Shown one piece after another: positions 15,192 through 58,787 of a stretch of DNA of 64,000 bases. The first letter of the stretch is position 1; each line of letters starts with the position of its first letter. The position numbers and the translations under genes were made by a program. The stretch lies in contig CATNEN010000001.1 of the NCBI GenBank assembly GCA_950097015.1, positions 25,234,001-25,298,000 of the forward strand, read 5' to 3'. The notes below the pieces were generated by a model. That model had not been told where the DNA came from, ran no database searches, and saw only the letters and a program-made list of their open reading frames with translations. The DNA is from Macrostomum hystrix (lineage: Eukaryota; Animalia; Platyhelminthes).

Positions 15192-15850
15192 CAGGGGTCG
15201 ACAAACTCCGGCCCGCGGGCCAGATGCGGCCCTCAAAGCTCCCAAATCCGGCCCGTTGCCCCTTCCGGCACCTATTGTATACAGTTTCATCTTTCCCCTG
15301 CCTCATCTCTCCCGTGTGTCGCCTTTCCCCCTGTCTCATCTCACCCCTTGTCTTATCTCTCCATTGTCTCGTCTCTCCCGTGTCTTGTCTCTCCATTGTC
15401 TCGTCTCTCCCATGTCTTATCTCTCCATTGTCTCGTCTTTCCCGTGTCTTATCTCTCCATTGTCTCGTCTCTCCCGTGTCTTGTCTCTCCATTGTCTCGT
15501 CTCTCCCATGTCTTATCTCTCCATTGTCTCGTCTTTCCCGTGTCTTATCTCTCCATTGTCTCGTCTCTCCCGTGTCTTATCTCTCCATTGTCTCGTCTCT
15601 CCCATGTCTCATCTCTCCCGTGTCTCATCTCTCCCGTATGTCATCTCTCCCGTGTCTCATCTCGCCATTGTCTCGTCTCTCCCGTGTCTCGTCTCTCCCG
15701 TGTCTTATCTCTTCTCTCTCTCATCTCTCCTGTTTCTCATCTCTCCCCTATCTCTGATATATTTCTCTTAGATTTCTACAGTCTGGCGGCCCGCTGTCGT
15801 CTTTTAGGTTCTCTTTTTAACCCGCTAGCTAATAAGCTTGCCGACCCCTG
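15192..15850. mobile_element. hAT (Charlie/MER58-like) non-autonomous MITE containing a 20-bp satellite
   Basis: Terminal inverted repeats CAGGGGTCGACAA...TTGCCGACCCCTG and subterminal CGGCCCGCGGGCCAGATGCGGCCC. The TSD is degenerate. Confidence 0.75.
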
Positions 15851-16849
15851 ACGTACGTATTTGGATTGACGGAATCGGAACAGCGCAATGTTTTCTCAGC
15901 TATCCAGATTTGTCGCGCAATTCTACTAATTCTCTTCTCTAATTGAATTTCTCAATCTGTTGTACACTGCCTATGAGCTGTACTTTTGTAGACTGTTGTC
16001 CAGTTTACACACGCCATTTTTTGTTCTCCACGTTGCTTAAAGCCAATTCTGTCTTTTGTTTAAACTGTTTCCTTTAGAAATTCAACGGAATCATTCCGTT
16101 TTTCTGCTTGGAGACATTCTATTGTGTATTTTTTATTGGTACACGTTCACAGTTGCGAACTGTTTTCCTAATATTTTTTATGTGTTGGAATGTCATGTGC
16201 AATGCTATTATGCTGCTATTTAAATTGTTATCTAGATCATAGTCACCTATTATTATTTATTTAAACTTTATTCTATTTTTTGCAAAAATGTTCTCATAAA
16301 AACGCATGATTTCTTATTATAAGATCTTATGATCAGTGTCATAGTTCAAATCCCCAAATTATCAGATCCCATCAACATTCGCATTATTTAAAATCCCCAT
16401 CAAGTGACAATACCACCAGGTGCAATAAATATTTGAGTTTTTTTAATCGCTTGCTCCCAATTTTCGAACTATTTTCCCTGCTTTTTTCGTTTTGATTTAA
16501 AGGCAGTGTGATATTAAAGAGAAGCGAAGTTATAATATTACTACTATTAGTTGCGATAATTGACAAAATAGTTACGAAAGTACACCTGCGGCGATCACAC
16601 GCTTTGAATATGCTTATCTAATGCTTACTGTGTACATAGTTAATTAGTATATACTCGCGTTTGCATAATTGTTCAATTAAGCTCGTATTTAAATTGCGTT
16701 TGTACAGAAAGCCTTAAAAAAGGTCCTGCTTCTATTGTGCTTATTTATCTGTTTCTTAGTTGCTTCTTTTAATAGCAAACGGTACTTCAGTCTATTTGCC
16801 TGGGCTTAATATCTCTGTTTTGGTTTGATAGTTTGATAGAAATCAATTT

Positions 16850-24500: not shown

Positions 24501-27500
24501 CAAACCTCACCCATGCCGCAGGAGGTGCTGCACGTGGACACAGATTCGCTGCGTCAAATCAACGACCTGATGCGGCCGTTTCGACCCCAGCTGCGTCTGG
24601 CGAAAGACATCGACGTGCACTATCACGAGGCCATCATCACTTCTGATGTGGCCTTCCTACCGCCTGAGTTCGATCCCTACGTGCTCAATGGGAGGCCGTC
24701 ACTGTGTATTGAAATCAAGGTAAATTGAAACGAGCCGCACACTAATTATACAGCAACGCTGCTATTTATTATTTCAGTATTGTTTATTTGTGACTATTGG
24801 AACTGATTGGCATTGTCCTTGGGCATTGTCACAGCTCATCATGGATGCCCACTGATCCGCCATAGTCGGTGGCAGCGGAGCCGGTGAATTCTCGCAGCGC
24901 TTCCAGCACCTCCGCTCTGCTCAGGCTGCCGTCCTTGTCCTTGTCTGCCGCTGCCATCAGCCTGTCCGCCTCCTCCGCGGCCTCGAGTTCCGCCTCGCCG
25001 TCGGCCTCGCCATCCTTGCCCTTCGCCGACTCCTCGAGATAGTCCAGCATCTTCTCCATCTCATTGGCGTCCAGCTGGCCGTCTTTGTCTGCATCCCAGA
25101 GTTCGCGGAAATTCTTCGCGTCCTCTTCTGACGCAGTCGTCGGCGTCGCCGATTCCGGCGCTCCGGCGAGGAATTCGGCCAGCGAGACTCGGCCGTCGCC
25201 ATCGGAGTCCATTCGCTCGAGCGCCTCCAGCGCCAGCACTCGACGCATCGCTGGCGACGGAGTTGACCAGGGCGCGGTGCCTTCTGCCAGGGCGAATGCG
25301 GCGAATTCCTTGCGGCTCAGCTGACCGTCGCCGTCAGCGTCGGCTGCCTCCCAGCGGCGACGATCGCGGCCCAACTCGACGGCCAGGCGCTGCTGATGCT
25401 GCTCCTTGCCATCAGATACTTGCTTCGCTGATTCCTTGTCGCCTGCGGGCCTCTGTTTCGGCAGCTCCGGCATGCCCACCTTGATGCCCGCCTTGTCTAT
25501 GCCCGTCTCCTTGCTGGCCTCTTCAATGGCTCGCTTTACATCGGCGTGAAGCTCCGCCTGCTGTTGCTCCTTGAGCTGATTGTCATCGCCTTCTGCTGAG
25601 TCCCAGCCAGCCGCTCTCCTGGCTGCGTGCGACTCCCAGTCCAGTCGAGTCTCAGCAGCTCCTGGCTCAGCCGAGGCCGCGGTGGTCAGGTTGTAGGCCT
25701 GCCAGGCTTCGTCCAGATCTCTTTCAGCCAGCTGCCTGTTGGCCTCGGCCAGCCAGCCCGTCAGCTCCTGCCGGGTCACCTTGCCATCCTTGTTCGCGTC
25801 CAGCTTCTCGTCGTAGAGCTTCGCCAGACTGTCCCTGGCTCTAGCCAGCTGCTCGACTGAGAAGTCTTCTTCATCAGCCGGCAAGGATTCCTCGGCACTG
25901 CTGCAGTGTGCCCAGCTAACAAAAGCTTGCAGTGAGAGCACAATGCCTAGCAGCCTTGCTAGCTGCATTGCCACGTGTCTTAGCTGCCACTCCGAGCCCA
26001 GCTCTGTCCATCCATTTATTCATTTTTCTGAGCAGAACTGACTCATTTTTATTGCAGACTTCCATCGTGTGCGCACGTGAGACACCCACCCCAATCTCCG
26101 CCACACAATGGCCCTCGGCCCCATTGTCTCTCATTCTCTGTCTCCCATACCCCTGTCTGTCAGGCTAACTGCGAGCTAGCCGCTTGAGTCGATGAACTCA
26201 AACTGAATGTATATTTGTACATTCTGCATTGTGCTAATGTAATAAAAAGATATGACTCAATTGTGTTAAATTGTGTTAAATTGTGTGGATTAATAAAAAT
26301 CAATGTATTCTGACAGATGTTTGCCTCAGCAGCTGTTACCCATTTTACAGTCTGGACAATAAAGCATTTAGGAATTCAATGTCTTGTTCAATAAATAAAA
26401 TTGTCTCCCTTTGTTGCTAAGGATTCGAACTCCCAACGTCTTAGAATTCCGCAGCTCCATGCCAACCAATGAGAGGCAAGCTCCCAAATTGGCCAATAGC
26501 GCGATAGGATTTTAATCACATCAATTGTCCGATCCCCATCAGGCCAAACAGGGCTTCATTCCGGTGTCAACGCAGGTGCAAGAGAAGGTGCGCCGGACTT
26601 GGTGCAGATTCTGTCTGATGCAGTTTCATCTGGTGAGCGAGTGTTTCAGCCCTAAAATTTCTTTTTCTTTTTTCACATTCTCATTTGCTAGATTTTCTCA
26701 TATTTCTACCTGCTTCTAGAAGAAAGGACGGCAGTACAATACTAGAAGTCAGTATTGCCCGTGCGATCTGTTCTCAGGGTGAGTGAACTATTTTTACTAC
26801 TCATAATACAAAGCTTAGAAGCTTTCTAAAGTTGGTAATTACTTTGCGGATTACAGCGACAAAACTCGAATGATTTCGGCCCTGAATGCGCTGATTGAGA
26901 CGCCTCAGATTAATCTGCGAGTTTTTCAGGTGAGCTCAGGTTTTCCTTGTGTACTTTTCACCCGGATATTAAGCCATTTGTTAAACATCCCATGCTCAAC
27001 CCAATGAAAACAACTCTACACTTTAGCCCAATGTACACTCCCCCTACCAACTCAGCCCAATGTACACTCCCCCTACCAACTCAGCCCAATGTACACTCCC
27101 CCTACCAACTCAGCCCAATGTACACTCCCCCTACCAACTCAGCCTAATGTACACTCCCCCTACCAACTCAGCCCAATGTACACTCCCCCTACCAACTCAG
27201 CCCAATGTACACTCCCCCTACCAACTCAGCCCAATGTACACTCCCCCTACCAACTCAGCCTAATGTACACTCCCCCTACCAACTCAGCCCAATGTACACT
27301 CCCCCTACCAACTCAGCCCAATGTACACTCCCCCTACCAACTCAGCCTAATGTACACTCCCCCTACCAACTCAGCCCAATGTACACTCCCCCTACCAACT
27401 CAGCCCAATGTACACTCCCCCTACCAACTCAGCCCAATGTACACTCCCCCTACCAACTCAGCCCAATGTACACTCCCCCTACCAACTCAGCCCAATGTAC

Positions 27501-31479: not shown

Positions 31480-32750
31480 GATATGGGATTCTGGTTTAGG
31501 TTTCGGGGTTCTGGTTTAGGTTTTGGGGTTCTGGTTTAGGTTTTGGGGTTCTGGTTTAGGTTTTGGGGTTCTGGTTTAGGTTTTGGGATTCTGGTTTAGG
31601 TTTGGGGATTCGGGTTAGTACTTTGAGATTCGGGCTTTGGTTCTATAGATTCAGATTTCGGTTTTGATATTCAGTTTAGGTTTTGAGATTCAGTTTTAGG
31701 TTTTGAGATTCAGTTTAGGTTTTGAGATTCAGTTTTAGGTTTTGAGATTCAGATTTAGGTTTTGAGATTCCGATTTAGGTTTTGAGGTTCAGTTTTAGGT
31801 TTTAAGATTCAGGTTTAGGTTTTGAGATTCAGTTTTAGGTTTTGAGATTCAGTTTAGGTTTTGAGATTCAGTTTTAGGTTTTGAGATTCAGTTTAGGTTT
31901 TGAGATTCAGTTTAGGTTTTGAGATTCAGTTTAGGTTTTGAGATTCAGATTTCGGTTTTGAGATTCAGTTTTAGGTTTTACGATTCAGGTTTAGGTTTTG
32001 AGATTCAGTTTTAGGTTTTGAGATTCAGTTATAGGTTTTAAGATTCAGGTTTAGGTTTTGAGATTCAATTTTAGGTTTTGAGATTCAGATTTCGGTTTTG
32101 AGATTCAGATTTCGGTTTTGAGATTCAGATTTAAGTTTTGAGATTCAGATTTCGGTTTTGATATTCAGTTTAGGTTTTGAGATTCAGTTTTAGGTTTTGA
32201 GATTCAGTTTAGGTTTTGAGATTCAGTTTTAGGTTTTAACATTCAGGTTTAGGTTTTAAGATTCAGTTTAGGTTTTGAGATTCAGTTTTAGGTTTTGAGA
32301 TTCAGTTTTAGGTTTTGAGATTCAGGTTTAGGTTTTGAGATTCAATTTTAGGTTTTGAGATTCAGATTTCGGTTTTGAGATTCAGATTTCGGTTTTGAGA
32401 TTCAGATTTCGGTTTTGAGATTCAGATTTCGGTTTTGAGATTCAGATTTCGGTTTTGAGATTCAGTTTAGGTTTTGAGATTCAGGTTTAGGTTTTGAGAT
32501 TCAGTTTTAGGTTTTGAGATTCAGGTTTAGGTTTTGAGATTCAGTTTTAGGTTTTGAGATTCAGTTTTAGGTTTTGAGATTCAGGTTTAGGTTTTGAGAT
32601 TCAATTTTAGGTTTTGAGATTCAGATTTCGGTTTTGAGATTCAGGTTTAGGTTTTGAGATTCAGTTTTAGGTTTTGAGATTCAGTTTTAGGTTTTGAGAT
32701 TCAGTTTTAGGTTTTGAGATTCAGTTTTAGGTTTTGAGATTCAGTTTTAA
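31480..32750. repeat. 19-20-bp minisatellite
   Basis: GGTTTTGAGATTCAGTTTTA units. Confidence 0.93.
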
Positions 32751-33319
32751 GTTAGTACTTTGAGATTGGGAGTTTAATGAGTTTAATGATAACTTAGTGA
32801 GTTTAATATTTCATGGTCAAACACGCGACATTTTTAGTGAGCACTAATATGTTTTTCTAAATATCAGCGAATAATGAATAATGATCAGTTGTATTTTGCT
32901 GTCGCTTAAAAAAACATTTACTAAAGCACTGCAGATAACATTTTTGAGGCGGTAACGGAAATAAAGCGGCTTCATGGCTATTGTTGAGTAATAATACTTT
33001 TTGTGTGCTCTGCACTCACTTGACTAAAAAACAAGTGACAGAAATAGGACATTGTTGAATTGTCAACAAGCTGCGAAAATCAGAAAATCCGAACTGCAAT
33101 AGAAACCTCAGGCCACAGAAAAACTGGACAGAACGCAAGAGGAACTCGAAAATTTTGGGAAGAGACAAATATGAATTAGCCCTCAGAGCTAAATATTTGA
33201 GACCTAAATTGTGGAGGCTGTGGATGATGCTGCTGGTTGGGGAGGCTGGGTGATGCTGTGTGTTAGTGAGTCTGATCAGCTTGTTGCCATGACAACGCAG
33301 ATGAGTTGACGCCGCGTCA

Positions 33320-36300
33320 TCAGTAGCCAGTGAGCTCGGCGAAGGTCTGGTCCAGCTCCTCGCTGAGACCCTTGTACCGCTCCTTCTCTGACAGCAGCTC
33401 GTCTGCGGGTTCGGGTGAAGATTTGGGATTCGGGTTTAGATTCTTGGGATTCGGGTTTAGATTCTTGGGATTCGGTTTTAGATTCTTGGAATTCGGGTGT
33501 AGATTTGGGATTCGGGTGTAGATTTCGGATTCGGGTGTAGATTTGGGATTCGGGTTTAGATTTGGTATTCGGGTTTAGATTTGGGATTCGGGTTCAGATT
33601 TGGGATTCGGGTTTAGATTTGGGATTCGGGTTCAGATTTGGGATTTGGGATTAGATTTAGGATTCGGGTTCAGATTTGGGATTCGGGTTTAGATTTGGGA
33701 TTCGGGTTCAGATTTGGGATTCGGGTTCAGATTTGGGATTCGGGTGTAGATTTGGAATTCGGGTTTAGGATTTGTACCAGTATTTATTGGTTTTTTGTTA
33801 CGCAGATTTTGTAAGTATTTTTAGCGCAAATGCTTGTAATTATCTGAAACTTCAAAGCTAATGCCTCAGTTTCGAAGAAAAAATCAGTTTAAAAATGTGT
33901 GGTGCACTCAGCGCTTGCTACAAGCTTAAACGTTATTGCACAGGGATCGTGTAGTTTTTTGTAGGCAATATGAACTGAATAATTGGTGAGTTTGTTAAAA
34001 TCACTCTATTAGACATATTTTAGTAAGCATAGAAAAGCGAATATTAGTACAAGCTGGATTAAAGCAAGCACCAAACAAGACAAAACGGTTTTGTACCAAC
34101 GCCAGCTGTCAAATGCTTTCAATCTCCTTGTAGTAGCTCTCCAGCTGTCCCTTGAGCAATATCAGGCTGTCCTTCTTCTGCAGCAGCTCAACTGACGATA
34201 CGATGGATATTGTGCAATCATTAGTAATTTGATCCCCAAGTCTAGGGATGATGCTATCCCATAAATAAGATCGATCGATAGAAATTTCTCAGGGCAAAAT
34301 TCTTAGCTGATGCTGGTTGCCCATGTTTTACAGGTGGGCGAACTGAAGCACTGAGGAAATCTGTGTCTTGCTCATGGACCCAAATTGATTCCCTAATATC
34401 GGTCTCTATCTATCTATTTGCAGGGGCGCCCGGGGCACTTGTCGCACAAGCGACGGAGCGGCACGCCCCCAGACCGGCGAACTAGGCGCTTAAGCGCCCA
34501 ACGCGCCGCCTCCCCTGAGCAGGCACCACACACAACAGCACAGACCAGCCGGGGAGGGCAGGAGGCACCCAGAATAGGCGGCAGTGTCCCCCACCCCAGC
34601 CCCACACACACATGGCAGACCAAGCCGGGGCGGAAGGCTGATAAGAAATCAGTCCTCAGGGGGGGGCCGGGTGATGAGTGTACACTTATCCAATCGCGCT
34701 GACGGAAGTCCAGAAAGCGCGCGGCGGTGTACACCCGCCCTCCAGCCACTCCCCGCAAGGTCTCACGCCCCAGCTCCAACGCACACAACTCACGCAACGC
34801 AGAACAGGCACACAGAAAGGTAGGAGCGAAGCTATTATTTCAAGCTTTGATTGCACGAAATATGGTGCACCTCCGCCGGTCGCTACTGTCCAAACCCCCC
34901 AACAAGTCCCGAAATTAATCGTGACTTGAAGGGTGAATCGAACTAGCGTCCTTTGGAGTGCGAGGCAGCGACGTTAGCCGCTGACCCACCCACTCCCTCC
35001 CTAATATCGGTCAGAAGTATTGTAACTCTAAACCAGCGGACTAACAGCACAAATTACTCGGGTGAGTTCTCAAATTATTTATTATATTTCACCTTCAGCC
35101 TCGTCGAGTTCCTTCTGTCTCTGGAGAGCCTCCTGTTCGGCGCTGATGGCTCGATGCTCGGCCTTCCAAAATGGCGATGTTAAAGTCATGCGCAGTACTC
35201 ATGCAGTGATTTAGAATGGGGTAAGCAGCAGCATGCATGTTTATAAGCAATCAAATTGATCTGCAGAGAGCGGATGTACAGCCCTGTGTGACTGTAAACA
35301 CCCCTGTAGGACCACTAGGAGCAAAACGACGGGAAACTATAAATTTCTTGGAAAATGTTTAGGAGACACGTTTCTTTCGCGGAAAAATACACCACGGAGT
35401 TGTGATCGCCGAAGTACAATTTTCTAAGAAACGCAGTCTTTCTACTCCTAGTGGGTCATTGTGTCCATTGCATAGATGGTTCAGGGCATGCGTTTTAAAA
35501 ACCTGTGGTTCCTTAAAACTAATATCAAGCAGTAAAACACAGTGTTGAAACATTATGAGATCACAGCTCAAGCATGCGACAAGCCAAGTCACAGATCCCC
35601 ATTGTGAGGATCTCGCACAGTCATGCAGGCACATGATCAGCCTATTCGTACCCTCCAGTCGATCCACCTCGCCCTGCAGCTTGGTCACCTGCCGTTCGGC
35701 CTCCGTGGCCCGCTGCTCAGCCTGCTCAGGAGAGAGCCAGTTTGGTGTGTTTGAGCACAATTAGGAGAATTTTTTTATCTACCAGAGACGGTCAAGATGC
35801 CAGGCGCATGCAATACTGACTACTTGTTAGTAGGGTTCAACGCATTTTTCTATGTTAACAGTCGAGTGAACACGACATTCTCCCCTGAGCAAAGTTTCAT
35901 CGGACAGAGCGGAAAATTTTAGCCCTGTCTTTTCATGGTAATTGCTCTGATCTTTTAGAAGATGCAGAAAATATAAATGTGGACATTATAAAATACCCCC
36001 TTGGTATTTCAATTGTTAATTTGATGTTGAAGTTCAGCAATTTTTACCTCCTGCAGTTTGAATTGCAGCTCTTGAATAAGCTTCTCCAGGTGGGTCTCCT
36101 TGCTCGAAGCCTTTCGTGCAAAAAGCGGATGGCATGCGAGGATATTTCGGGAATCGATGTTAAGATATCAGTTATTTGTGAATGCAACGTTAAATAATAT
36201 TGGCATGCGCTTCTATTTCTACTCTGAGTAGAACATTTCAGTGGTCTAACTTATTATTACTTTTCCAAGCCAAAAAGCCAGCAACCACGCCATGCTTTGA

Positions 36301-39300
36301 GTAGGGAATGGGGTGGCAGTTCACGGCAGCCGTCTCTGATTGGTTGGGTTCTGTTAAACTCATCAGCCAATGAGCGAATGCCTCACAGCCTTCAGACGGT
36401 CCGTCAGGTCCCGGATGGTCTCCTCGTAGGACTCCTCTCGTTGGGCGGCCTCCTGCTCGGAGATCTCCAGCGACTTCATGTTGCTGCCAACAACTCGAAG
36501 CTCTTCCTCCAGCTCGAGCACTTTGCTGCAACAATGCGCGTGAAACTTTCTTTCTTTTGGTCCAGTGCGTGCCGCTTGCGAGTGTTAGCAAATAATTTGT
36601 GATTAGCGTTATAGTTGAGTCTGAGTGACAGGATTGGAATTCTAGTTGAGTCTGAGTGACAGGATTGGGATTCTAGTTAGGTCTGAGTGACAGGATTGGG
36701 ATTCTAGTTGAGTCTGAGTGACAGGATTGGGATTCTAGTTGAGTCTGAGTGTGACAGGATTGTGATTCTAGTTGAGTCTGAGTGTGACAGGATTGGGATT
36801 CTAGTTGAGTCTGAGTGTGACAGGGTTGTGATTCTAGTTGAGTCTGAGTGTGACAGGATTGGGATTCTAGTTGAGTCTGAGTGTGACAGGATTGGGATTC
36901 TAGTTGAGTCTGAGTGTGACAGGATTGGGATTCTAGTTGAGTCTGAGTGTGACAGGATTGGGATTCTAGTTTTAAAGAATGTATCGAAAATGTGAATACT
37001 AGCTAGTAGCTAGGTTATATGATTTTTGTTTAATTTCCGTAATGCTGTAACGCATAATTTAAGAATTTCGCGATAAAGAACAGGTGCATGCAGGCCCATT
37101 CGTTAAAGTAAATCATTACCTTTTTTCTGAAAGAAGCTGAAAAGATGAAACTATTTTTCTTTCATGCAATGCAAAAGATGGGAATATTATCTGAGAGCCT
37201 GGCGTGGTTGTTGACTTTATAATTTTTTTAATTATAACACTTTTCTCGGCAGCCACCTTACGCCACACGCCCACAGTGCGAAAAAACACCACCTCATTCC
37301 CCGCCTGACCTTTCCTGCTTAACTTCTAACCCTCATTGGCACCCACCTCACGCCGCGTTAACAGCACCCAGGCTTAAAACACCAACCACCTCATTCCATG
37401 CCTTCTCTCTCCGTCTGAACTTCTAACCCTTCTCGATACCCACCTCACGCCACTCCAAAAGTACACAGGCTTAAAACACCAACCACCCCATGCTTAACTT
37501 CTAACACTTTCAGCCATTTGTCGATAGCAAGCTACATAACCGAACCTTCTCTTCGCTGATCTGCAGCGACTTCAAGTTGTTGCTGACTGTGCTCAACTCG
37601 TCACGAAGTTGACGCGCCTTGGCGGTGCCATTTTCGGCTCGCTCCTCTGCCTGGTCCACTTCTTTGTCAACTTCGATCCACCGATTGTACACCTTGTTGG
37701 TGGGGAGATTCGACACGTGCTTCGTTAAACTACATGCACCTTTTGATCAATCATGCAATTGAAAAACGCTTAGAAATCATGCAACTAATCGGGATGCTTA
37801 ATTAAAACGTCAAAGCACGCAATTTTCAACTCTAACCGCCGTGGACCCCAGCTAAAAGTGCAACCTCTCGGCGCTCTCCAGGCGAGACTCGGCCCTCTCC
37901 AGGTCGCCCTCGGTGATGGCCAGCTTCCTGGCCGCCTCGTCGTACTTTCGGTCGGCGTCCTCGGCGATGTACTTGGCCTCCTTCAGCTGCTCCTCCAGCG
38001 AGTTGATGCGCTCGTCGTCAGAGATGGAGCGAGTTTCCAGCACTTTGCGGCCTCTGACCAACACAGAAGTTGCGCAAGGTTGCTAATTACGGGACACTTG
38101 CTCCCAGCCCATAGCCTCAATTGTCTAGCCAGAAAAACTCACGATTATTGATAAGGAAATGCACTCGTGTTGATTTTGTGCGGTTACTTTTTAGCAAGTT
38201 CACGCATTAGATTAGCTAATGAAATGACTAATCCGTTGCTTCAGTTCCACGCAGCGGTAAAGTGGGTGGACGTTCGTGGCGCCTCCCACCCAGTCCGCAG
38301 ACTGAAAAACTTGTGCCTATCTAAGTTGCTCATCATTCATTGTAATTGATGAGCCTTGAGTTGTGGTAAATGATAACGCGTTTGCCTCTCGCACCAAGGT
38401 CCCTGAGCTTGATTCCGCGGCGAGGCCAAATTAATTTGGGGCGCAGCCACTGAGAGAAGGCTTGGGGGCTTGTCGTACACTTTATACGCCCTTGAGGGCC
38501 AACCTTTAAGGCACAGTGAGAGTGTACACTGCCTGATGATGAGAAGGTCAGGCCAGATGTACACACCTGTGTGAGCGTGTGCCTGCGTACGGTATCTGTG
38601 TGCGTGTGTGCTCAGGAGTCAGCGAAATGGGCAGAATTGCCTCCTCGCTGGCTGCGGGTCTAGCGTCACCAAATGATGTGCCATTGCCCGCAGCCCTACT
38701 GCAATAAAGTGCAATGCAGAGACATAATGCAATTTTGGTTTTTGCTAAGTAGATTTTCCATCACCAACAAGTTTGGGTTGGTTGTAAAACTCACTCTTAA
38801 AATTAGCACACTTGAATTGTGTTTGTTAAAATGCTTCTACCATAAAAGCTTGTGTTAAGCAACATTATGATCGCTGATATGCAGTGCAGGTAATGACTAG
38901 TCACCTCTTTGTATTTCAGCTCATTTTCAGCGGCCAACTCGTCGGCCTCAGCGGCCTGACGCTCCAAATTGTCGAGCTGGCTGTCCTCGGCTGTGTGACG
39001 ACTTTCAAGCACATTCAGAGCCCTACGTTTGAGTCGACAGGCGCGTTTGAGATTGGGAAGGAAGCAAGACAGACGTGAGAGTTCTGATGGGGTGAAAATA
39101 TGAGAAGAGAGAGATGAAACAATCGAGGATGAGACAGGGAAAAGATAAGGTAGGGAGAGATGAGACAGGGGAGAGATGAGGCGGGGGAGAGATAAGGCAG
39201 GCAATAGATGAGACAGGGAAGAGATGAGGCAGGCGAGAGATGAGACAGGGGAGAGATGAGACAGGGGAGAGATGAGACAGGGGAAGGTTGAGGCAGGCGA

Positions 39301-42124
39301 TAGATGAGACAGGGAAGAGATGAGGCAGGCGAGAAATGAGGCAGGCGAGAAATGAGGCAGGCGATAGATGAGACAGGGAAGAGATGAGGCAGGCGAGAGA
39401 TGAGACAGGGGAGAGATGAGACAGGGGAGAGATGAGACAGGGAGAGATGAGACAGGGGAGAGATGAGACAGGGGAGAGATGAGACAGGGGAGAGATGAGG
39501 CACGCGATAGATGAGACAGGGGAGAGATGAGACAGGGAGAGATGAGGCAGGCGAGAGATGAGACAGGGGAGAGATGAGACAGGGGAGAGATGAGACAGGG
39601 GAGAGATGAGGCACGCGATAGATGAGACAGGGGAGAGATGAGACAGGGAGAGATGAGGCAGGCGAGAGATGAGACAGGGGAGAGATGAGACAGGGGAGAG
39701 ATGAGACAGGGGAGAGATGAGACAGGGAGAGATGAGACAGGGGAGAGATGAGGCAGGCGAGAGATGAGACAGGGGAGAGATGAGACAGGGGAGAGATGAG
39801 GCACGCGATAGATGAGACAGGGGAGAGATGAGACAGGGAGAGATGAGACAGGGGAGAGATGAGGCAGGCGAGAGATGAGACAGGGGAGAGATGAGACAGG
39901 GGAGAGATGAGGCACGCGATAGATGAGACAGGGGAGAGATGAGACAGGGAGAGATGAGGCAGGCGAGAGATGAGACAGGGGAGAGATGAGACAGGGGAGA
40001 GATGAGGCACGCGATAGATGAGACAGGGGAGAGATGAGACAGGGAGAGATGAGGCAGGCGAGAGATGAGACAAGGGAGAGATGAGACAGGGGAGAGATGA
40101 GACAGGGGAGAGATGAGACAGGCGAGAGATGAGACAGGGAAGAGATGAGGCAGGCGAGAGATGAGGCAGGGAAGGGATGAGGCAGGCGAGAGATGAGGCA
40201 GGCGATAGATGAGACAGGGGAGAGATGAGGCAGGGGAGAGAGAGTTTTGGAAGTGGCCGAGAAGCGAGGCTCGCTGTCAGCAGTTGGACGGCCCATGTTA
40301 TAAAATGATCAATCGAGAGAGCATGCAGAATTTACTGGGCTCAGGTGAACTCACCGTTCGCTCTCATCAGCGGCCTTGCTGGCCTCCTCCAGCTTCTGTG
40401 TGGCCTCCTGCAGGCGGGTCTCAGTCTGCTCAAGATCCTCCTCGATCAGTCGGATTCGCCTTGTCAGGGCTTGCACCTCAGCCTCGGCCTGCGAATTAAT
40501 TAGTAATCGGTGTTAATTTACAAATTTTGTCAACCATTCTATTAATTTAATTACTAAAATAAATTAATGACCAAAGCAATAAATTTGGTCTACAATCAGG
40601 ACAAAAAAGATTGCATTTCAAACTTTTCAAAAGAGTTTGAAACACAACTAGACTCCAGAATTAAATTTAAGAAGTTAAAACCCTCAACTTTATTTCTTTT
40701 AGACTGATAAAAAATGTTTTATTGAAGTTTTTTGTGATTTCGCTCTTGGCTTTAGATTCAGAGCTTGTTATTGTTATTTTATTGAAATATTGAAAAGTCC
40801 ATGGTCGTTTTATTGTTAATTTTCAAACAACCTTTATATAAACATAAAAATAGTCAAGAACCTAGGTGAAGGGACCATTTTTAAGCTACAATTGTCAAGT
40901 TAAAATAAATATTTATATTTCATATTTTATAACAATTATTTTGCAACTGGACTATTGTTACATCTGTTTGAAATCTGTACTGTTTATAGAGTATTTAGTG
41001 CCAAAAATAAAAAAATTGTTTTCAAAGTAATTTTGGCGCTGAATCTGATGCTTTAAACAATTTTTTTTCTTGCGCATACATCTCTCTTCTTGTTGTCCTC
41101 TTCGTCTAACTCCTGGGTCTTCTTCTCCAGTTCCTCATTGGTCGCGTCTAGTTCTTTGCGAAGCGTTTGCAATTTATGTTTCAAAATTGACAGAACGCTC
41201 TGAGACTGTCCAGAATTAGCCATTCTATAAAGATTTTTAGCTCAAGATTAAAGTTGATGAAAATAACTTTTATTTGCTGTACGCCCCTTAGCTAAATAAC
41301 GGAAGTAAAATAAATTAAATTGCGGAAAATTCCAGACCACGTGCCAAGTTGAAAATGTTACTGTGTTAGCATTTAAACAAATTGCTAACGGCTCGCTTTT
41401 GCTAACATAGACTGTATTTTAGTAAAAATTGTGTTAAAACATATTTTATATGGTTTTGATTTTTAGCTTTTATATTTTAATACTTATTTGAAAGCACTAT
41501 TTTTGTTAATTAAAAGTCGTTCGCTTTTATTTATGAGTAAAACTTCAAAGGCTAGAAATGCGGCAGAAATGAAAAATGAAATCGAGTAATTTGACTGCAC
41601 TATTTAATTCAATGCTTCCATTGTGACAGCTAGTTTTTATTGAAAAGGCTGTTAATCCTAACTAAGCTCTCAAATCTTACCACACAAAAGTTTCACAGAA
41701 TTTAGGCGTGTAAATGCTCGCGTAAATTCAGTTTTATAACACGATGCAAAATCCAATAAAATTTGAGAGCTGAACACACAAAAGAACACTTACATCACTG
41801 GCTCTCTTTTCAGTGGCCTCAAGGTTGGTGTTAGCCCCAGCTAGGGCTTCCTGTGCAGTGTCCAGATCTTGTTGCAGCTGCGAGAACTTCTTCTGCAGCT
41901 CGCCCATCTCCTCCTCTTTCTTAGTCATTTCGTCTTCTTTTTCCTTGAGCTTGGCATCAACCTGGTCGGCCCTGGGTGTTACAAATCACTTTGGGGTTAA
42001 TTACGACTAGAGGTGCTTTATAATTTCACACTTCAAGCGCAAAATGTTCACCTATTGCTCACCTATCCATAGCGTTCTCTTTCTCAAGCTTCATAGCCAG
42101 CATCTTCTTCTTGATTGCGTCCAT
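33320..42124 (-). CDS. TPM: Tropomyosin, canonical long (muscle-type) isoform, 284 aa; exons 42063-42124, 41794-41971, 40355-40488, 37865-38053, 36387-36525, 35652-35721, 33320-33402
   Basis: [21 protein letters not shown]...[20 protein letters not shown]...[24 protein letters not shown]...[12 protein letters not shown]. The exons sum to 855 nt, exactly 284 aa plus stop, and all introns are GT-AG. Confidence 0.96.
33405..33770. repeat. 19-bp minisatellite abutting the acceptor of the last tropomyosin exon
   Basis: GGGATTCGGGTTTAGATTT units. Confidence 0.9.
34109..41223 (-). CDS. TPM: Tropomyosin, short divergent (cytoskeletal-type) isoform, 252 aa; exons 41080-41223, 40355-40488 (shared), 38905-39022, 37546-37692, 36048-36110, 35093-35162, 34109-34191
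   Basis: Alternative first exon [26 protein letters not shown]..., followed by exons of canonical tropomyosin sizes (134, 118, 71+76, 63, 70, 83 nt). Each has GT-AG borders, an open frame and heptad-like sequence. Total 759 nt. Confidence 0.85.
34405..34997 (-). mobile_element. tRNA-derived SINE family 1, full length (~590 bp), in a tropomyosin intron
   Basis: A-box TGGGTCAGCGG and B-box AGTTCGATTC on the minus strand, (ATAG)n tail, and a 15-bp TSD TCCCTAATATCGGTC (34390-34404 / 34998-35012). A near-identical copy lies at 51222-51808. Confidence 0.88.
36612..36970. repeat. 31/33-bp minisatellite
   Basis: TAGTTGAGTCTGAGTG(TG)ACAGGATTGGGATTC units. Confidence 0.9.
38357..38700 (+). mobile_element. 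SINE family 2 copy in a tropomyosin intron
   Basis: Colinear similarity to 7655-7995. Confidence 0.8.
39100..40242. repeat. 20-bp GA-rich satellite (same family as 15290 and 46520)
   Basis: GAGATGAGACAGGGGAGA-type units. Confidence 0.93.
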
Positions 42125-43508
42125 GTTTGTTCTTTTGGTTAAATTAGGCAGACAGTTAAAAAATCTAGGTTGACTTTTTGTCTGCTACGAAATTCGGTCA
42201 AACAATTCCGTCGACCTTCAAATATATCCTTCAGCCGTGCTAGCCGGGCGAAGACAATCCACCAGGACTCGGACACAGGACGGCTTTTAAATAATTGCTT
42301 GTACCGAGCGACCACCATTGGACCCAAGACTACAACCTATAGGAAATTTCCGGCTGATGGAAAGATGTGGGGAAAACCCATGGGGAACGGAAAATGAGGG
42401 CAAGACGGGAGGATTTTCGCAGACCCTCGGATCGTCCCTCAACCGTTATCGATCGTCCAAATTCACTCGACTCTGTCCCGGTGACGTCAGCCAACCATCA
42501 AGTTCGCCTTGTCCATCTAGACTTTGCAGTTTAGGCCGCATACCACAGACAAATCCCGCACCCCGTGAAGCAGCGAACCTGCCTTTCAGCTCCTTGCCAA
42601 CTTCTACGTGCGAGAGAAAACTTTTTTGGCGGCTTACTAACACGCCAGGTCATCCAGCCACTAGCACCACAGGAAGCTCTCGCGGCTTGAAGTACCGGAA
42701 TAATCGTAAATATATATATTAGGAAGCCATTTGCAGAAGATAATTGCTTCTGGCTCACTAAAATCTGGACTTGTTTGTGAAAAGAAGCAATCTTTCATAA
42801 TATATAGGTGTGCAGCTGCAGGCCAATATTCACACAGTTTAGAAAACGCATTTTCTAACGAGCATAAACAAATCAGAACCCCTCCTCACAGTGGCGCTAT
42901 CGCGGCTGCTGCAGCGATAAGGCTGATGGAACAGACCTCATTCGCGAATACCTGGCAAAGAGTTCATCTTTCGACTTGCATTAGCAATAAACTTTACAGT
43001 TGATTGTATATATTATACAGAAAACTCACGGCCGAAATAGTTTGCTTATAGAGTCTTAAGAAAGCGTCGAAGAAATGGAATTAATTGATGATGAACTTGC
43101 TTGGCCTTTCCTGGAGTCATGCAGCATTGGTTTGTGGTCTGTGTATAAATGCGATCGCTGCTTTAAGATTCTGTAGACTTTGATTGACAGAATCTATTCA
43201 GTCACAATGGAATCGTTTCGTTTCCAAGCGCACCCAGGTATGGGTCAGTACAGTTATTTGCAGCGTACATGTACTCCTATCTACCTCCGTAAAAAACTTC
43301 AACTCTAAGCCTGGGTATAACGAGTGAGACTTGCGTCAGTTTATTTGACTATTTCGTATTTGGGCCGTGCAGACCGGCATTGATTGATAAAAGCAGGTGA
43401 AATTATTGATGGCATTGATTGATAAAAGGATTTGTGATTAATAATTGGAGTCGAATGACAAAAATAAAATTTGTCCAAGTAAAAACACATTGCAGCTGCT
43501 TGCAGTTG

Positions 43509-46095: not shown

Positions 46096-49000
46096 GTCGT
46101 AGCTGGAATAGTAGTCGTTCGAGAAGCTTTTGAGTCGTCCATGAATCGTTGGAGTCGCTAAAGAAACTTTTAAGTCGTTAGAAAAAATGGTTGAGTAGCA
46201 AACAAGTGGTCTTGAACAACTCTGTATAAGACCGCTTGCCACGGTTCAGTTTTCAGCATTAAGAATTGTTTTAATTTTGTCTATAAGATACAGTCATTAC
46301 TGTTCTGATTCTACAAAAATATTGCCTCCAAATTTCACAGGTGCGACCGTCTGACCGATCCAAGCCCCTAGCCACCGATGTGAAGCCGGCCACTAACAGT
46401 CCATTGTGGAACTATGTTGCTGAGGCATCTCTTTGATAATTCATTGTTTACTTATCCGGATAAGGCCTGCCTGCTAACATTCAAGGTATGGAATACCTAT
46501 ATACCTACCTATATGGAATGCCTATCTCTCCCCTGTCTTATCTCTCCCCTGTCTCATCTCTCATTTGTCTCATCTCTTTTTTCGGAAGAGATGTCTTAAA
46601 ATAAACTTAAAATCCTTTCTATACGCAGATTCTGCTTTTTTTGTCAAAATTTTTTGTCGATTTCTCCCCTGTCTCATCTCTCCCATGTCTCATCTCTCCC
46701 CTGTCTCATCTCTCCCATGTCTCATCTCTCCCCTGTCTCATCTCTCCCCTGTCTCATCTCTTCCCTGTCTCATCTATCGCCTGCCTCATCTCTTCCCTGT
46801 CTCATCTCTCCCATGTATCATCTCTCCCCTGTCTCATCTCTCCCATGTATCATCTCTCCCCTGTCTCATCTCTCCCATGTCTCATCTCTCCCCTGTCTCA
46901 TCTCTCCCTTGTCTCATCTCTCGCCTGCCTCATCTCTTCCCTGTCTCATCTATCGCCTGCCTCATCTCTCCCCTGTCTCATCTCTCCCCTGTCTCATCTC
47001 TCCGGTGTCTCATCTCTTCCGTGTATAATCTTTCCCCTGTCTCATCTCTCCCCTGTCTCATCTCTCCCCTGTCTCATCTCTCCCATGTCTCATCTCTCCC
47101 CTGTCTTATCTCTCCCTTGTCTCATCTCTCCCATGTCTCATCTCTCCCCTGTCTCATCTCTTCCCTGTCTCATCTATCACCTGCCTCATCTCTCCCCTGT
47201 CTCATCTCTCCCATGTCTCATCTCTCCCCTGTCTCATCTCTCCCATGTCTCATCTCTCCCCTGTCTCATCTCTCCCCTGTCTCATCTCTTCCCTGTCTCA
47301 TCTATCGCCTGCCTCATCTCTTCCCTGTCTCATCTCTCCCATGTATCATCTCTCCCCTGTCTCATCTCTCCCATGTATCATCTCTCCCCTGTCTCATCTC
47401 TCCCATGTCTCATCTCTCCCCTGTCTCATCTCTCCCTTGTCTCATCTCTCGCCTGCCTCATCTCTTCCCTGTCTCATCTATCGCCTGCCTCATCTCTCCC
47501 CTGTCTCATCTCTCCCCTGTCTCATCTCTCCGGTGTCTCATCTCTTCCGTGTATAATCTTTCCCCTGTCTCATCTCTCCCCTGTCTCATCTCTCCCCTGT
47601 CTCATCTCTCCCATGTCTCATCTCTCCCCTGTCTTATCTCTCCCTTGTCTCATCTCTCCCATGTCTCATCTCTCCCCTGTCTCATCTCTTCCCTGTCTCA
47701 TCTATCACCTGCCTCATCTCTTCCCTGTCTCATCTCTCCCATGTCTCATCTCTCCCCTGTCTCATCTCTCCCATGTCTCATCTCTCCCCTGTCTTATCTC
47801 TCCCCTGTCTCATCTCTCCCATGTCTCATCTCTCCCCTGTCTCATCTCTCCCCTGTCTCATCTCTCCCATGTCTCATCTCTCCCCTGTCTCCCATGAATC
47901 GTACAAGGAAACGTATCTAGAATCGTAACAAGAACGTAGCCAGAATCGTACCAGGAAACGTAGCTAGAATCGTACAACGAAACGTAGCTAGAATCGTACA
48001 AGGAAACGTATCTAGAATCGTAACAAGAACGTAGCTAGAATCGTACCAGGAAACGTAGCTAGAATCGTACAAGGAAACGTATCTAGAATCGTAACAAGAA
48101 CGTAGTTAGAATCGTACCAGGAAACGTAGCTAGAAATCGTACAAGGAAACGTAGTCGTAGCTGGAATAGTAGTCGTTCGAGAAGCTTTTGAGTCGTCCAT
48201 GAATCGTTGGAGTCGCTAAAGAAACTTTTAAGTCGTTAGAAAAAATGGTTGAGTAGCAAACAAGTGGTCTTGAACAACTCTGTATAAGACCGCTTGCCAC
48301 GGTTCAGTTTTCAGCATTAAGAATTGTTTTAATTTTGTCTATAAGATACAGTCATTACTGTTCTGATTCTACAAAAATATTGCCTCCAAATTTCACAGGT
48401 GCGACCGTCTGACCGATCCAAGCCCCTAGCCACCGATGTGAAGCCGGCCACTAACAGTCCATTGTGGAACTATGTTGCTGAGGCATCTCTTTGATAATTC
48501 ATTGTTTACTTATCCGGATAAGGCCTGCCTGCTAACATTCAAGGTATGGAATACCTATATACCTACCTATATGGAATGCCTATCTCTCCCCTGTCTTATC
48601 TCTCCCCTGTCTCATCTCTCATTTGTCTCATCTCTTTTTTCGGAAGAGATGTCTTAAAATAAACTTAAAATCCTTTCTATACGCAGATTCTGCTTTTTTT
48701 GTCAAAATTTTTTGTCGATTTCTCCCCTGTCTCATCTCTCCCATGTCTCATCTCTCCCCTGTCTCATCTCTCCCATGTCTCATCTCTCCCCTGTCTCATC
48801 TCTCCCCTGTCTCATCTCTCCCCTGTCTCATCTCTCCCATGTCTCATCTCTCCCCTGTCTCATCTCTCCCCTGTCTCATCTCTCCCCTGTCTCATCTCTC
48901 CCATGTCTCATCTCTCCCCTGTCTCATCTCTCCCTTGTCTCATCTCTCCCTTGTCTCATCTCTCCCCTGTCTCATCTCTTCCCTGTCTCATCTCTCCCAT

Positions 49001-49780
49001 GTATCATCTCTCCCCTGTCTCATCTCTCCCATGTCTCATCTCTCCCCTGTCTCATCTCTCCCTTGTCTCATCTCTCCCTTGTCTCATCTCTCCCCTGTCT
49101 CATCTCTCCCCTGTCTCATCTCTTCCCTGTCTCATCTATCGCCTGCCTCATCTCTTCCCTGTCTCATCTCTCCCATGTATCATCTCTCCCCTGTCTCATC
49201 TCTCCCATGTATCATCTCTCCCCTGTCTCATCTCTCCCATGTCTCATCTCTCCCCTGTCTCATCTCTCCCTTGTCTCATCTCTCGCCTGCCTCATCTCTT
49301 CCCTGTCTCATCTATCGCCTGCCTCATCTCTCCCCTGTCTCATCTCTCCCCTGTCTCATCTCTCCGGTGTCTCATCTCTTCCGTGTATAATCTTTCCCCT
49401 GTCTCATCTCTCCCCTGTCTCATCTCTCCCCTGTCTCATCTCTCCCATGTCTCATCTCTCCCCTGTCTTATCTCTCCCTTGTCTCATCTCTCCCATGTCT
49501 CATCTCTCCCCTGTCTCATCTCTTCCCTGTCTCATCTATCACCTGCCTCATCTCTTCCCTGTCTCATCTCTCCCATGTCTCATCTCTCCCCTGTCTCATC
49601 TCTCCCATGTCTCATCTCTCCCCTGTCTTATCTCTCCCCTGTCTCATCTCTCCCATGTCTCATCTCTCCCCTGTCTCATCTCTCCCCTGTCTCATCTCTC
49701 CCATGTCTCATCTCTCCCCTGTCTCATCTCTTCCCAGTCTCATCTCTCCCATGTCTCATCTCTTCCCAGTCTCATATCTT
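45838..49780. repeat. 2058-bp-period tandem segmental duplication including 20-bp CT-rich satellite blocks
   Basis: The unique spacer at ~46100-46660 recurs at +2058 (identical ORFs 45954/48012 and 46414/48472). Junction at 47895/47896. Confidence 0.9.
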
Positions 49781-50125
49781 TTTTTGGAAGAGATGTCTCA
49801 GAATATACTCAAAATCCTTTCCATACGCATATTATGCTTTTTGCTCGGCAAAAATGTTTGTCTATCAAAAACAGTGGCCCGGATGTGTTGCAGTTACTGA
49901 AATCCCACATTACATTATCGATTTGCCACAGTATGGTTACTTGATTACAAATATTCACACTTCGAAAGAACGATGAGTTTATCATTTAGCTATCTACTCA
50001 GCTCGTGATAAGGTTTATTTTTTATTCATATGCACTGCCACCAACCATAGAAATTGTAGATTGTAAAAATCTCACAGTGTCTCACAGCCTACCTCTCACA
50101 GTGTCTCATGTATACTCATGTGTAC

Positions 50126-53100
50126 TCAGCGGAACACCAAGCCTGAGCAGTTCAACGCCTTGTCAATCCACAGCCTGGCACGGTCTTTGCCAACCAGACG
50201 GAGCAAACGGAAATAGACGGGCTTCTCGACGTTCAAGGATGTACTGGCGATGCTGTCAAGCGCGGCCTGCTTCGCCGCTCCGGTCAGCAAGAAGGCAACT
50301 TCATTGGAGCGAGCAATTTCACTGGCCGCCAGGCTGACACGGAGCTGCGGTGCCTGCGGAGAAGAAGTGAATCGCGCCGACTGGCTGAGACAATCGGTTG
50401 ACAATGACAAACTGCAGTCGATTCCGCTCAAGTCCCGATCAGTAAACAGTGACGCTGCGTGGCCGTCAGCTCCGACGCCGAGGACGACAAAGTCGAAGCC
50501 GCTGCGGTCTCGCAGCCACAGGTTGACCTCGCTGGAGTAAGCAGCGGAGGCAGCCCTGCAGTCGGCAGCATCTTCGCTGGCAGGTCGGGGGAAATGCAGC
50601 CGACTGACTGGCAGCCTCGCAGCCGCAGGCAGCAGGTGCAGGAAGTACCGATCGATTACAGCGGAGTTTAGGCTGGAGCTCTTCAGCTTAGCAGCGTCCG
50701 GATCTGATGGATGCAGCGAAATTATTCTGTGAAATATTGGATGGCTTCTAGTTTGAATGAACCTTGAGCACACACGTAAACAGGTTTGAGTGAGTGCATG
50801 AGTACGGTATACGATTGTGTGCTCAGAAGTTAGTGGAATCAGCAGAATTGCCTCCTCGCTGGCTGCGGGTCTACAGTCACTAATATTTTGACCCAAATTT
50901 CTAACTGCAGCTGACTACATGAAAGCAATAGAGAATTTAGTGTTTTGCTTAACAATAGAGGGACCACAGGGATATTTGAAATACCAACATTTAATTAGTT
51001 GTCCTTATCATCAGGGTCTTCGACAAGAATCGTTGAATATCCCGACGATGCTCTAGTGTTCATCGTAAAGGGCGGAAAATTTAGATCCAGATGGTGGACT
51101 TTCACGAAAATCGGTCATTCGGTTTGGGAGCAGCAGTGAAGCACGTAGTGTGAATTTGACATACCCCGTGTTCTACTGTTAAGGACTTAAATGGCTTCTG
51201 AGATTAGAACTCGTGACGTCTCTCTATCTATTTGCAGGGGGCCCGGGGCACTTGTCGCACAAGCGACGGAGCGGCACGCCCCCAGACCGGCGAACTAGGC
51301 GCTTAAGCGCCCATTGCGCCGCTTCCCCTGAGCAGGCACCACACACAACAGCACAGACCAGCCGGGGAGGGCAGGAGGCACCCAGAATAGGCAGCAGTGT
51401 CCCCCACCCCAGCCCCGCACGCACAGAGCAGACCAAGCCGGGGCGGAAGGCTGATAAGAAATCAGTCCTCAGGGGGGGGCCGGGTGATGAGTGTACACTT
51501 ATCCAATCGCGCTGACGGAAGTCCAGAAAGCGCGCGGCGGTGTACACCCGCCCTCCAGCCACTCCCCGCAAGGTCTCACGCCCCAGCTCCAACGCACACA
51601 ACTCACGCAACGCAGAACAGGCACACAGAAGGTAGGAGCGAAGCTATTATTTCAAGCTTTGATTGCACGAAATATGGTGCACCTCCGCCGGTTGCTACTG
51701 TCCAAACCCCCCAACAAGTCCCGAAATTAATCGTGACTTGAAGGGTGAATCGAACTAGCGTCCTTTGGAGTGCGAGGCAGCGACGTTAGCCTCTGACCCA
51801 CTCGCCCCAACTCGTGACGTCTACCTCTGGGCTAATCGAATGGAGAAGTCAGACTCACCATCCAGGACACATCTCTCATCAGTCAGCCAGATGTGCACAA
51901 TGTGGCCAATAGCGTCCGCAAGGCTTCCATCGTCTCGAGCCATTGTGGCCAGCGACTGCATCAGAAGCTGCGCCGATTGGCCACCGGGCAGGGCCAGGTG
52001 AAAGTCGGGGTGCTCATCGCCGTGAGAGCCCGCAGCTGCTTTGATTTTCAAAGCGATTCGTTCAGCCAACTGACTCGATAAGGACTGAGGAGTGCCGCTG
52101 TGAATCAGGAAGGAGCAGTCTTCCAGTCCATCGCACAATGTCCGGTCGAAGCGAACCCGCCTCGGAGACGCTGATCCTCTGGCACTTGTTGTCGCGTGTG
52201 CACCAGCAGCGGCGCTGGACACCGTGACTTTCGGCTCCGCCGACCAGTCAAGACGACCCAGACGATCAACGGTGAAGTCTGGCAGCCAGTTGGGCTGGTA
52301 AACACGAAACTGTGGGACAGGGTTGAGTTTTTTTTCAGGGAAACCTTCAGTCTAAATTAATAAATTAATGTTTAATTAGTGTAATACTGGCCTTATAATT
52401 TACAAAATAATTAAAGCTACTAAACATTAATACTTTAATTTTGGGCGCAGCCGCGGAGAGAAGACTTGGAGGCTTGTCGTGCAATCTTCGCCCTTGAGAG
52501 CAAACCTCCAAGAAAAAGTGAAAGTGTACACTGCCTGATGATGAGAAAGTCAGGGAGATGTACACACCTGTGTGAGCGTCTGCTTGCTCTGCTTTCTCCT
52601 TGGAACACACACGCACACACGCACATTGCTCCTCCCAATGTGGCCTCGCCGCAGAATCGAGCTCAGGGACCTTGGTGCAAGAGGCGAACGAATTAGTATC
52701 TATCTACGAGTAGTCTGTAAGGTACGTGTAGAGAAGTAGGTAGGGTAGACGCGGCCACAGATAATATACAACTAGATTGGTCACTCAGTTAATTTTATCT
52801 CACACTACTCTTAGGACCAGCCATCAGTAGCAAAAATAGCCAAAAAAAAATCAAGTTTGCAAATTTGTAAAATAGTCTTTTGATAGCAAGAAACTTGATA
52901 TGCATGAGCACACTATGCATTTATTTCTGACATCAATGTATATTGTATTATTCGAATCGCTGTAAGCTCTAAATCCAGCTCAAGAATTCCTTTCCATCGA
53001 GTAGCCACCGCGTCATCGGCTGGGAATCTGTGCATTCGCACTGGAGTTCTGGTATCGCCAGTGTATGCTTGAGCTGTATTTGTGCAAGTGGCTGCATAAC

Positions 53101-58727: not shown

Positions 58728-58787
58728 CAAAATATGCTGAGCTAATTTCCAAGAATCCTAAGGTGAGATATTTGATGCAGGGTTTAT

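Follow-up and report, generated by a model that had tools for sequence, protein, structure and literature searches.

A 64,000-nucleotide (nt) stretch of the genome of the flatworm Macrostomum hystrix (contig CATNEN010000001.1, positions 25,234,001 to 25,298,000 of the forward strand; hereafter the window, to which all coordinates refer unless another contig is named) carries on its minus strand, at 33320-42124, a tropomyosin gene whose exons assemble into two proteins with a single coding exon in common. With a probability of roughly 85%, we read it as one of three paralogous flatworm tropomyosin genes built from "internal paralogs", in which the M chain is a conserved muscle-type tropomyosin of 284 residues and the C chain a short protein of 252 residues, the choice between M and C exons being hard-wired by the exon structure for the block of exons 4 to 7 and regulated elsewhere, in part through (U)GCAUG motifs.

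Gene organization

Translation of the minus strand from 33000 to 42400, combined with a reading of the DNA at each open stretch, gives 13 tropomyosin exons (Table 1), which follow one another from 5' to 3' as M1, M2, C1, E3, C4, M4+5, C5+6, M6+7, C7, M8, C8, C9, and M9, with AG and GT flanking the exons at all internal borders. The M chain (M1-M2-E3-M4+5-M6+7-M8-M9) amounts to 852 nt or 284 codons and the C chain (C1-E3-C4-C5+6-C7-C8-C9) to 756 nt or 252 codons, both without an internal stop. E3 is the sole coding exon that belongs to both chains, and the form-specific share of the coding sequence is 82% in the short form and 84% in the long form. The exon lengths are those of ancestral tropomyosin exons or the sums of two neighbors (134, 118, 118+71, 71+76, 76+63, 63, and 70 nt). 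The two alternative 5' coding ends, of 80 codons (M1+M2) and 48 codons (C1), are present in this gene and in both of its paralogs described below.

Matches of the larger exons to the Pfam family Tropomyosin (PF00261) are colinear along the profile. Unaided, E3, M4+5, and M6+7 all score above the family cut-off of 38.6 bits; the weaker matches of M2 and C4 (E-values of 4.6e-6 to 2.6e-4) and of C5+6 fall at the expected profile positions, and C7, C8, and C9, with 21 to 26 residues, are too short to be scored. No additional tropomyosin-like exon was found by tblastn between 30000 and 46000. An earlier reading of this DNA (the original prediction) had proposed 13 exons in these places and in this order, with which the borders, lengths, phases, and open chains agree; the 284-residue tropomyosin it assigned to the M set is confirmed by the open chain and the colinear profile matches, and the very divergent 252-residue protein with canonical exon sizes it assigned to the C set by an open chain of that length, which is 33% identical to the M chain after E3.

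Constraints imposed by the exon structure

Among the 512 ordered exon paths that were enumerated, 80 are in frame and 16 are of full length, the latter being the product of two starts, two versions of the block of exons 4 to 7, two exons 8, and two exons 9. No full-length in-frame path is an M/C hybrid within the block. The M series is cut there as 4+5/6+7 and the C series as 4/5+6/7, and because these cuts are staggered, any crossing between M and C in the block leads to a frameshift or to an exon equivalent that is doubled or missing. The block is hard-wired as all-M or all-C, and the start, exon 8, and exon 9 are formally free; the coordination of the two interdigitated exon sets is thus partly built into the gene, with three decisions that still need regulation.

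Such a layout could have arisen if exons 4, 5, 6, and 7 had each been duplicated in tandem, in alternating order (C M/M C/C M/M C), and the three introns between neighbors of the same type had then been lost, which would leave the order C4, M4+5, C5+6, M6+7, C7.

Splicing of both chains

Assembled contigs of the public runs X2, X3, and X4 were placed on positions 33300-39060, that is, on exons C4 to M9; this stretch was chosen because the contigs break at the common exon and because it avoids the 1.1-kb tandem array at 39100-40241. The three runs are not recorded as RNA, and the canonical spliced joints they contain show that RNA-derived sequence is present. These GT..AG joints lie on the minus strand exactly at the predicted exon borders (Table 1). 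A single X2 contig of 276 nt runs through C5+6-C7-C8-C9, and a single X3 contig of 322 nt, with no mismatches, through M6+7-M8-M9. None of the 15 best-supported joints, beside which there are 11 weaker ones, combines an M with a C exon. Between exons 4 and 9, the splicing of both chains matches the prediction. The original prediction had named as outcomes speaking against it that C exons never appear in transcripts or that M and C exons mix freely; the contigs hold the complete series of joints C4>C5+6>C7>C8>C9, and mixed joints are absent from the 15 listed for exons 4 to 9.

One tentative joint, 34097>33402, leads from a GT located 12 nt past the C9 stop to the M9 acceptor, and is seen in X4 only, with 29 letters on its short side. 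It raises the tentative possibility that C9 can act as an internal exon spliced to M9, with M9 doubling as 3' untranslated region (UTR) of the short form. If the joint is real, the single shared exon of the original prediction, which stands for the coding exons, is slightly too strict at the RNA level. Another candidate joint, 36503/37934, was rejected as the cross-mapped message of a paralog, being non-canonical (TT..CC) and carrying 10 mismatches, and loose contig ends at 33324 match the 3' flank of a paralog (gene B).

The short chain and the paralogous genes

One heptad register runs through the C chain, C1 to C9, with hydrophobic residues at a fraction of 0.78 of the a and d positions vs 0.47 in the next register; the M chain likewise has one register (0.83), the next register standing at 0.47-0.49 over the two chains. 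Database searches were done exon by exon, the joined chains of 284 and 252 residues being compared locally only. The best matches of C5+6 in a HMMER search of 1.84 billion representatives are generic tropomyosin pieces only (43-57% identity), none of them an orthologue of the C chain; a word-indexed search with the region 258-300 of the long open frame containing C4 gave no match. From the single heptad register, the low identity, and the spliced contigs, it follows that the C chain is divergent but intact and expressed. It is presumably a short, cytoskeletal tropomyosin.

A search of the M. hystrix genome (220 Mb in 42 contigs) revealed two further tropomyosin loci, near 3.03 Mb of genomic contig C8 and near 11.8 Mb of genomic contig C38. 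Both contain the same 13 exons in identical interleaved order, with identical lengths and phases, the lengths common to all three genes being 62, 178, 134, 118, 189, 147, 139, 63, 70, 70, 80, and 80 nt. Their chains are open, with 284 residues for each M chain and 251 and 258 residues for the C chains. After E3, the M sets of the three genes are 86-94% identical and the C sets of the two paralogs 58% identical to each other, and the C set of the present gene shares 31% and 38% with those of the paralogs. In a tree of the 159 residues after E3 from the three genes, the split between M and C is supported at 100/99. The agreement of the three genes in exon order, lengths, and phases, together with this split, indicates that the interleaved layout is older than the gene duplications and was retained in all three copies. 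The short chain of the present gene is the fastest-evolving of the three.

A wider comparison is offered by an annelid gene model, KAK2162087.1 of Paralvinella palmiformis, in which a 49-residue unit of 5+6 type (28/49 identical to the C5+6 of a paralog) is joined directly to a unit of 6+7 type (39/45) and an M8-type exon (19/23), and which also carries a C-terminus of short-form type. The model has probably mis-joined the parts of an interleaved tropomyosin gene similar to the one described here, and suggests that the staggered neighbors are older than flatworms. The paralog on genomic contig C38 has an extra exon-8-like open stretch between its C8 and C9 exons (L008:7079-7162; G000:C38:11820079-11820162), which may be a third exon-8 variant.

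Coordination of the remaining choices

In a ranking of 921 5-mers, made without a presupposed motif over the 200 nt upstream of C4, C5+6, C7, C8, and C9 in the three genes, GCATG comes first, with 27 occurrences where 5.1 are expected (binomial P = 6.6e-14, corrected 6e-11). Over the same distance upstream of M4+5, M6+7, M8, and M9 in the three genes it occurs three times and ranks 571st. The present gene has 18 GCATG motifs, 12 of which fall within the three short intervals that lead from an M exon to the next C exon (Table 1). The RNA counterpart (U)GCAUG is the binding site of Rbfox proteins, and sites downstream of an exon favor its inclusion, while sites upstream of an exon repress it. 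In rat heart, RBFOX2 controls an alternative exon of Tpm1 (PMC8419188). The enrichment points to a shared Rbfox-like splicing factor rather than to promoter coupling alone.

The choices of start, exon 8, and exon 9 would then be coordinated by regulation, at least part of which would act through the (U)GCAUG clusters, which follow M exons and immediately precede C exons; by the position rule of Rbfox, M exons would be promoted and C exons repressed where the factor is expressed, for example in muscle. The enrichment before short-form exons is strong and conserved among the paralogs, and offers a directly testable model of how the remaining choices are kept in step. More speculatively, and with less than even odds in our estimate, one (U)GCAUG-binding factor might switch all short-form exons of the three paralogs as a unit, the sites lying between each M exon and the next C exon so that a single binding event would promote the former and block the latter, and the C chain of the present gene would be a fast-evolving, neofunctionalized short tropomyosin. 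If true and unpublished, this would be a simple cis-code that coordinates five or more distant splice choices.

The main alternative for the coordinating device is the promoter. One upstream of M1 or C1 might set all downstream exons, for instance through factors loaded onto the polymerase or through the rate of elongation, which fits the presence of C1, with an ATG of its own, between M2 and E3 in all three genes, as well as a review that ties exon assignment to alternative promoters (PMC3342872). Against such coupling, the strongest cis signal found is the splicing-factor motif beside the C exons, which would serve equally if promoter and splicing factor were merely co-expressed in one cell type. 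We therefore hold promoter coupling to be a doubtful explanation, and the shared splicing motif appears to be the better-supported coordinating device.

A separate internal promoter may also be dispensable if the 5' end of the short form comes from trans-splicing of a spliced leader, or from splicing of a non-coding exon located upstream, to an acceptor just before the C1 ATG. Acceptor-like sites with pyrimidine runs do occur 1-9 nt before this ATG in the three genes (tctttatAG, catcctctAG, and atatatccAG), but chance alone would place an AG within 10 nt in about 40% of cases, and we rate this origin as rather unlikely, slightly more so than promoter coupling. The sites lie at 41224-41232 in the window and at L005:6239-6258 and L006:6806-6825 in the paralogs, and the M1 exons have no such site in good form; an upstream exon or a spliced leader may form the 5' end of short-form messages.

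Free combination of the exons, with many isoforms from the locus instead of two, is improbable. The 16 full-length in-frame combinations would allow it and the weaker joints could be taken in its favor; against it, all best-supported joints are M-M or C-C, the single contigs from C5+6 to C9 and from M6+7 to M9 are unbranched, and the divergence of the C chain extends to its exons 8 and 9 along with the others. Least credible of all, to the point of being nearly dismissible, is the idea that this gene's C exons are copies in decay that no longer function, for although their set is the most divergent of the three (31-38% to the paralogous C sets vs 58% between those) and neither the C5+6 nor the C4 search gave a close relative, the 252-codon chain is open with exact exon lengths, canonical splice sites, and an unbroken heptad register, and spliced C contigs come from runs that also yield the M chain.

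Several points weigh against our own reading, that of two chains kept apart partly by exon structure and partly by (U)GCAUG-dependent regulation. The 11 weaker contig joints outside the 15 listed leave room for rare mixed forms, and the linkage shown by the contigs, which break at the common exon, extends from exon 4 to exon 9. The muscle-specific role of M and the cytoskeletal role of C are inferred from other flatworms (PMC4015340). On the regulatory side, C4 and C9 of this gene have no GCATG in the 200 nt upstream, and a search of the genome for an Rbfox homologue with PF12414 (Fox-1_C) was blank, as were its controls, and is hence uninformative.

Relation to known tropomyosin genes

The flatworm tropomyosin genes tpm-1 and tpm-2 (Koziol et al. 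2011, Mol Biochem Parasitol 175:181; Alvite & Esteves 2009, Gene 433:40) each give a long isoform, of muscle, and a short one, with different starts. Most of their exons are reportedly duplicated and mutually exclusive, with only one exon common to the two isoforms (Koziol et al. 2011). Neither study is known to cover the macrostomid lineage. The present gene resembles tpm-1 and tpm-2 in its long, presumably muscle, form and its short form with predicted alternative starts; it differs in belonging to a set of three such genes, found in a macrostomid, and in the unusual divergence of its short chain. In cestodes, there are two genes, tpm-1 and tpm-2, whose long, high-molecular-weight (HMW) isoforms are muscle-restricted according to an isoform-specific HMW probe (PMC4015340).

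Across animals, tropomyosin exons were duplicated independently in most bilaterian lineages, and each copy belongs to either the long or the short isoform, which are defined by their promoters (PMC3342872, which cites both Koziol et al. 2011 and Irimia et al. 2010). The present gene shares with these "internal paralogs" the alternative promoters, putative here, the recurrent tandem duplication of exons, and the assignment of copies to the long or short isoform: its M and C versions of exons 4 to 9 are homologous and of equal total length, and among the 15 listed joints they are connected only M to M or C to C. Up to 77% of two transcripts is reported to come from different DNA in such genes (Irimia et al. 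2010, Mol Biol Evol 27:1504). At 82% and 84% form-specific sequence vs this reported maximum, the present gene stands at about the extreme of the known range and is no new kind.

In C. elegans, lev-11 has retained several exons common to its products and joins the alternative ones in many combinations, and it is not known to contain a staggered exon fusion. It is comparable as one gene with two promoters and several mutually exclusive exon sets that yields long and short tropomyosins in tissue-specific use (PMC5921574). Vertebrate TPM1 has equal ancestral exon sizes (134, 118, 71, 76, 63, and 70 nt), starts of exon 1b type and 1a+2 type, muscle exons that are linked along the message, and control of exon 6a by RBFOX2 and PTBP1 (PMC8419188), but it retains a multi-exon common core (exons 3, 4, 5, 7, and 8), where only exon 3 is common here.

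A literature search returned no publication on the structure of Macrostomum tropomyosin genes. By the criterion of the original prediction itself, that prior documentation removes novelty, the novelty it claimed for the architecture nevertheless does not hold, since the assignment of duplicated exon copies to two promoter isoforms is documented in the review cited above (PMC3342872); its picture of two genes zipped together is a fair one, of a known design. The architecture is the usual tropomyosin "internal paralogy", reportedly described for flatworms too, and in itself teaches little new. The locus is of value as a clean example, expressed and with junction-level RNA support, of one transcription unit that holds two proteins with a single coding exon in common. 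The hard-wiring of part of the exon coordination by staggered intron loss may be worth the attention of specialists, as may the GCATG enrichment before the short-form exons.

Table 1. Exons, splice joints, motif clusters, and tandem repeats of the tropomyosin gene and its 3' flank (window coordinates)
Feature	Position	Strand	Description
M1	42124-42063	-	62 nt; ATG at 42124; donor GTGAGC; first coding exon, long form; 62-nt counterpart in both paralogs
M2	41971-41794	-	178 nt; completes long-form residues 1-80; PF00261 positions 22-79
C1	41223-41080	-	144 nt, 48 codons, own ATG; predicted alternative first coding exon, short form; C1-type exon in same place in both paralogs
E3	40488-40355	-	134 nt; common exon; PF00261 positions 39-82, E = 5.8e-11; single copy in locus
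C4	39022-38905	-	118 nt; short-form exon 4; PF00261 positions 86-122
M4+5	38053-37865	-	189 nt; fused exons 4 and 5, long form; PF00261 positions 85-145, E = 1.5e-20
C5+6	37692-37546	-	147 nt; fused exons 5 and 6, short form; PF00261 positions 130-171, E = 4.1e-8
M6+7	36525-36387	-	139 nt; fused exons 6 and 7, long form; PF00261 positions 147-192, E = 4.1e-15
C7	36110-36048	-	63 nt; short-form exon 7
M8	35721-35652	-	70 nt; long-form exon 8
C8	35162-35093	-	70 nt; short-form exon 8
C9	34191-34112, stop 34111-34109	-	last coding exon, short form; possible donor at 34096, exon then ending at 34097
M9	33402-33323, stop 33322-33320	-	last coding exon, long form; possibly also 3' UTR of short-form messages
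Joint M4+5>M6+7		-	runs X2, X3, X4
Joint M6+7>M8		-	runs X2, X3, X4
Joint M8>M9		-	runs X2, X3, X4
Joint C4>C5+6		-	run X4; 296-nt contig, 122 letters on short side
Joint C5+6>C7		-	runs X2, X4
Joint C7>C8		-	runs X2, X4
Joint C8>C9		-	runs X2, X4
Three (T)GCATG motifs	37733..37782	-	172-nt interval M4+5 to C5+6
Three GCATG motifs	36133..36295	-	276-nt interval M6+7 to C7
Six GCATG motifs	35187..35626	-	489-nt interval M8 to C8; 3 of 6 within 75 nt of the C8 acceptor
Minisatellite	39100-40241		16-bp unit x 71; intron
Minisatellite	36612-36971		33-bp unit x 11; intron
Minisatellite	33410-33774		19-bp unit x 19; intron
Minisatellite	32000-32753		20-bp unit x 38; 3' flank

Repeats and neighboring genes

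Two interspersed repeats lie in introns of the gene. The first, of about 330 bp (38374-38703, between C4 and M4+5), has at least 3090 candidate copies in the genome, of which 40 were scored at 92-93% identity, and reaches a depth of up to about 14900, with many variants, in the X4 contigs; the extreme depth implies that the family is either abundantly transcribed or of very high copy number. It looks like a short interspersed nuclear element (SINE), and Rfam gave no match to it or to any other part of the window. The second, a young repeat of 585 bp (34405-34989, between C8 and C9), is G+C-rich and occurs in RNA-type contigs, has at least 526 candidate copies (40 scored at 96-98% identity), and recurs in the window at 51219-51801. 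Tandem repeats make up much of the window, including a 5.9-kb array at 8269-14169, and arrays at 15173-15851 and 46565-49976 give translations similar to that of the 16-bp array within the gene.

Elsewhere on the minus strand, an intronless open reading frame (ORF) of 381 residues at 24829-25974 has a signal-peptide-like start, an acidic sequence of EF-hand-like appearance by eye, and a C-terminal HDEL, and probably encodes a calcium-binding protein resident in the endoplasmic reticulum. An exon ORF at 58128-58730 (minus strand) has distant matches to glucose-6-phosphate dehydrogenase and an ORF at 50126-50896 (minus strand) is 6-phosphogluconolactonase-like by eye; the two may form a bifunctional gene of H6PD type.

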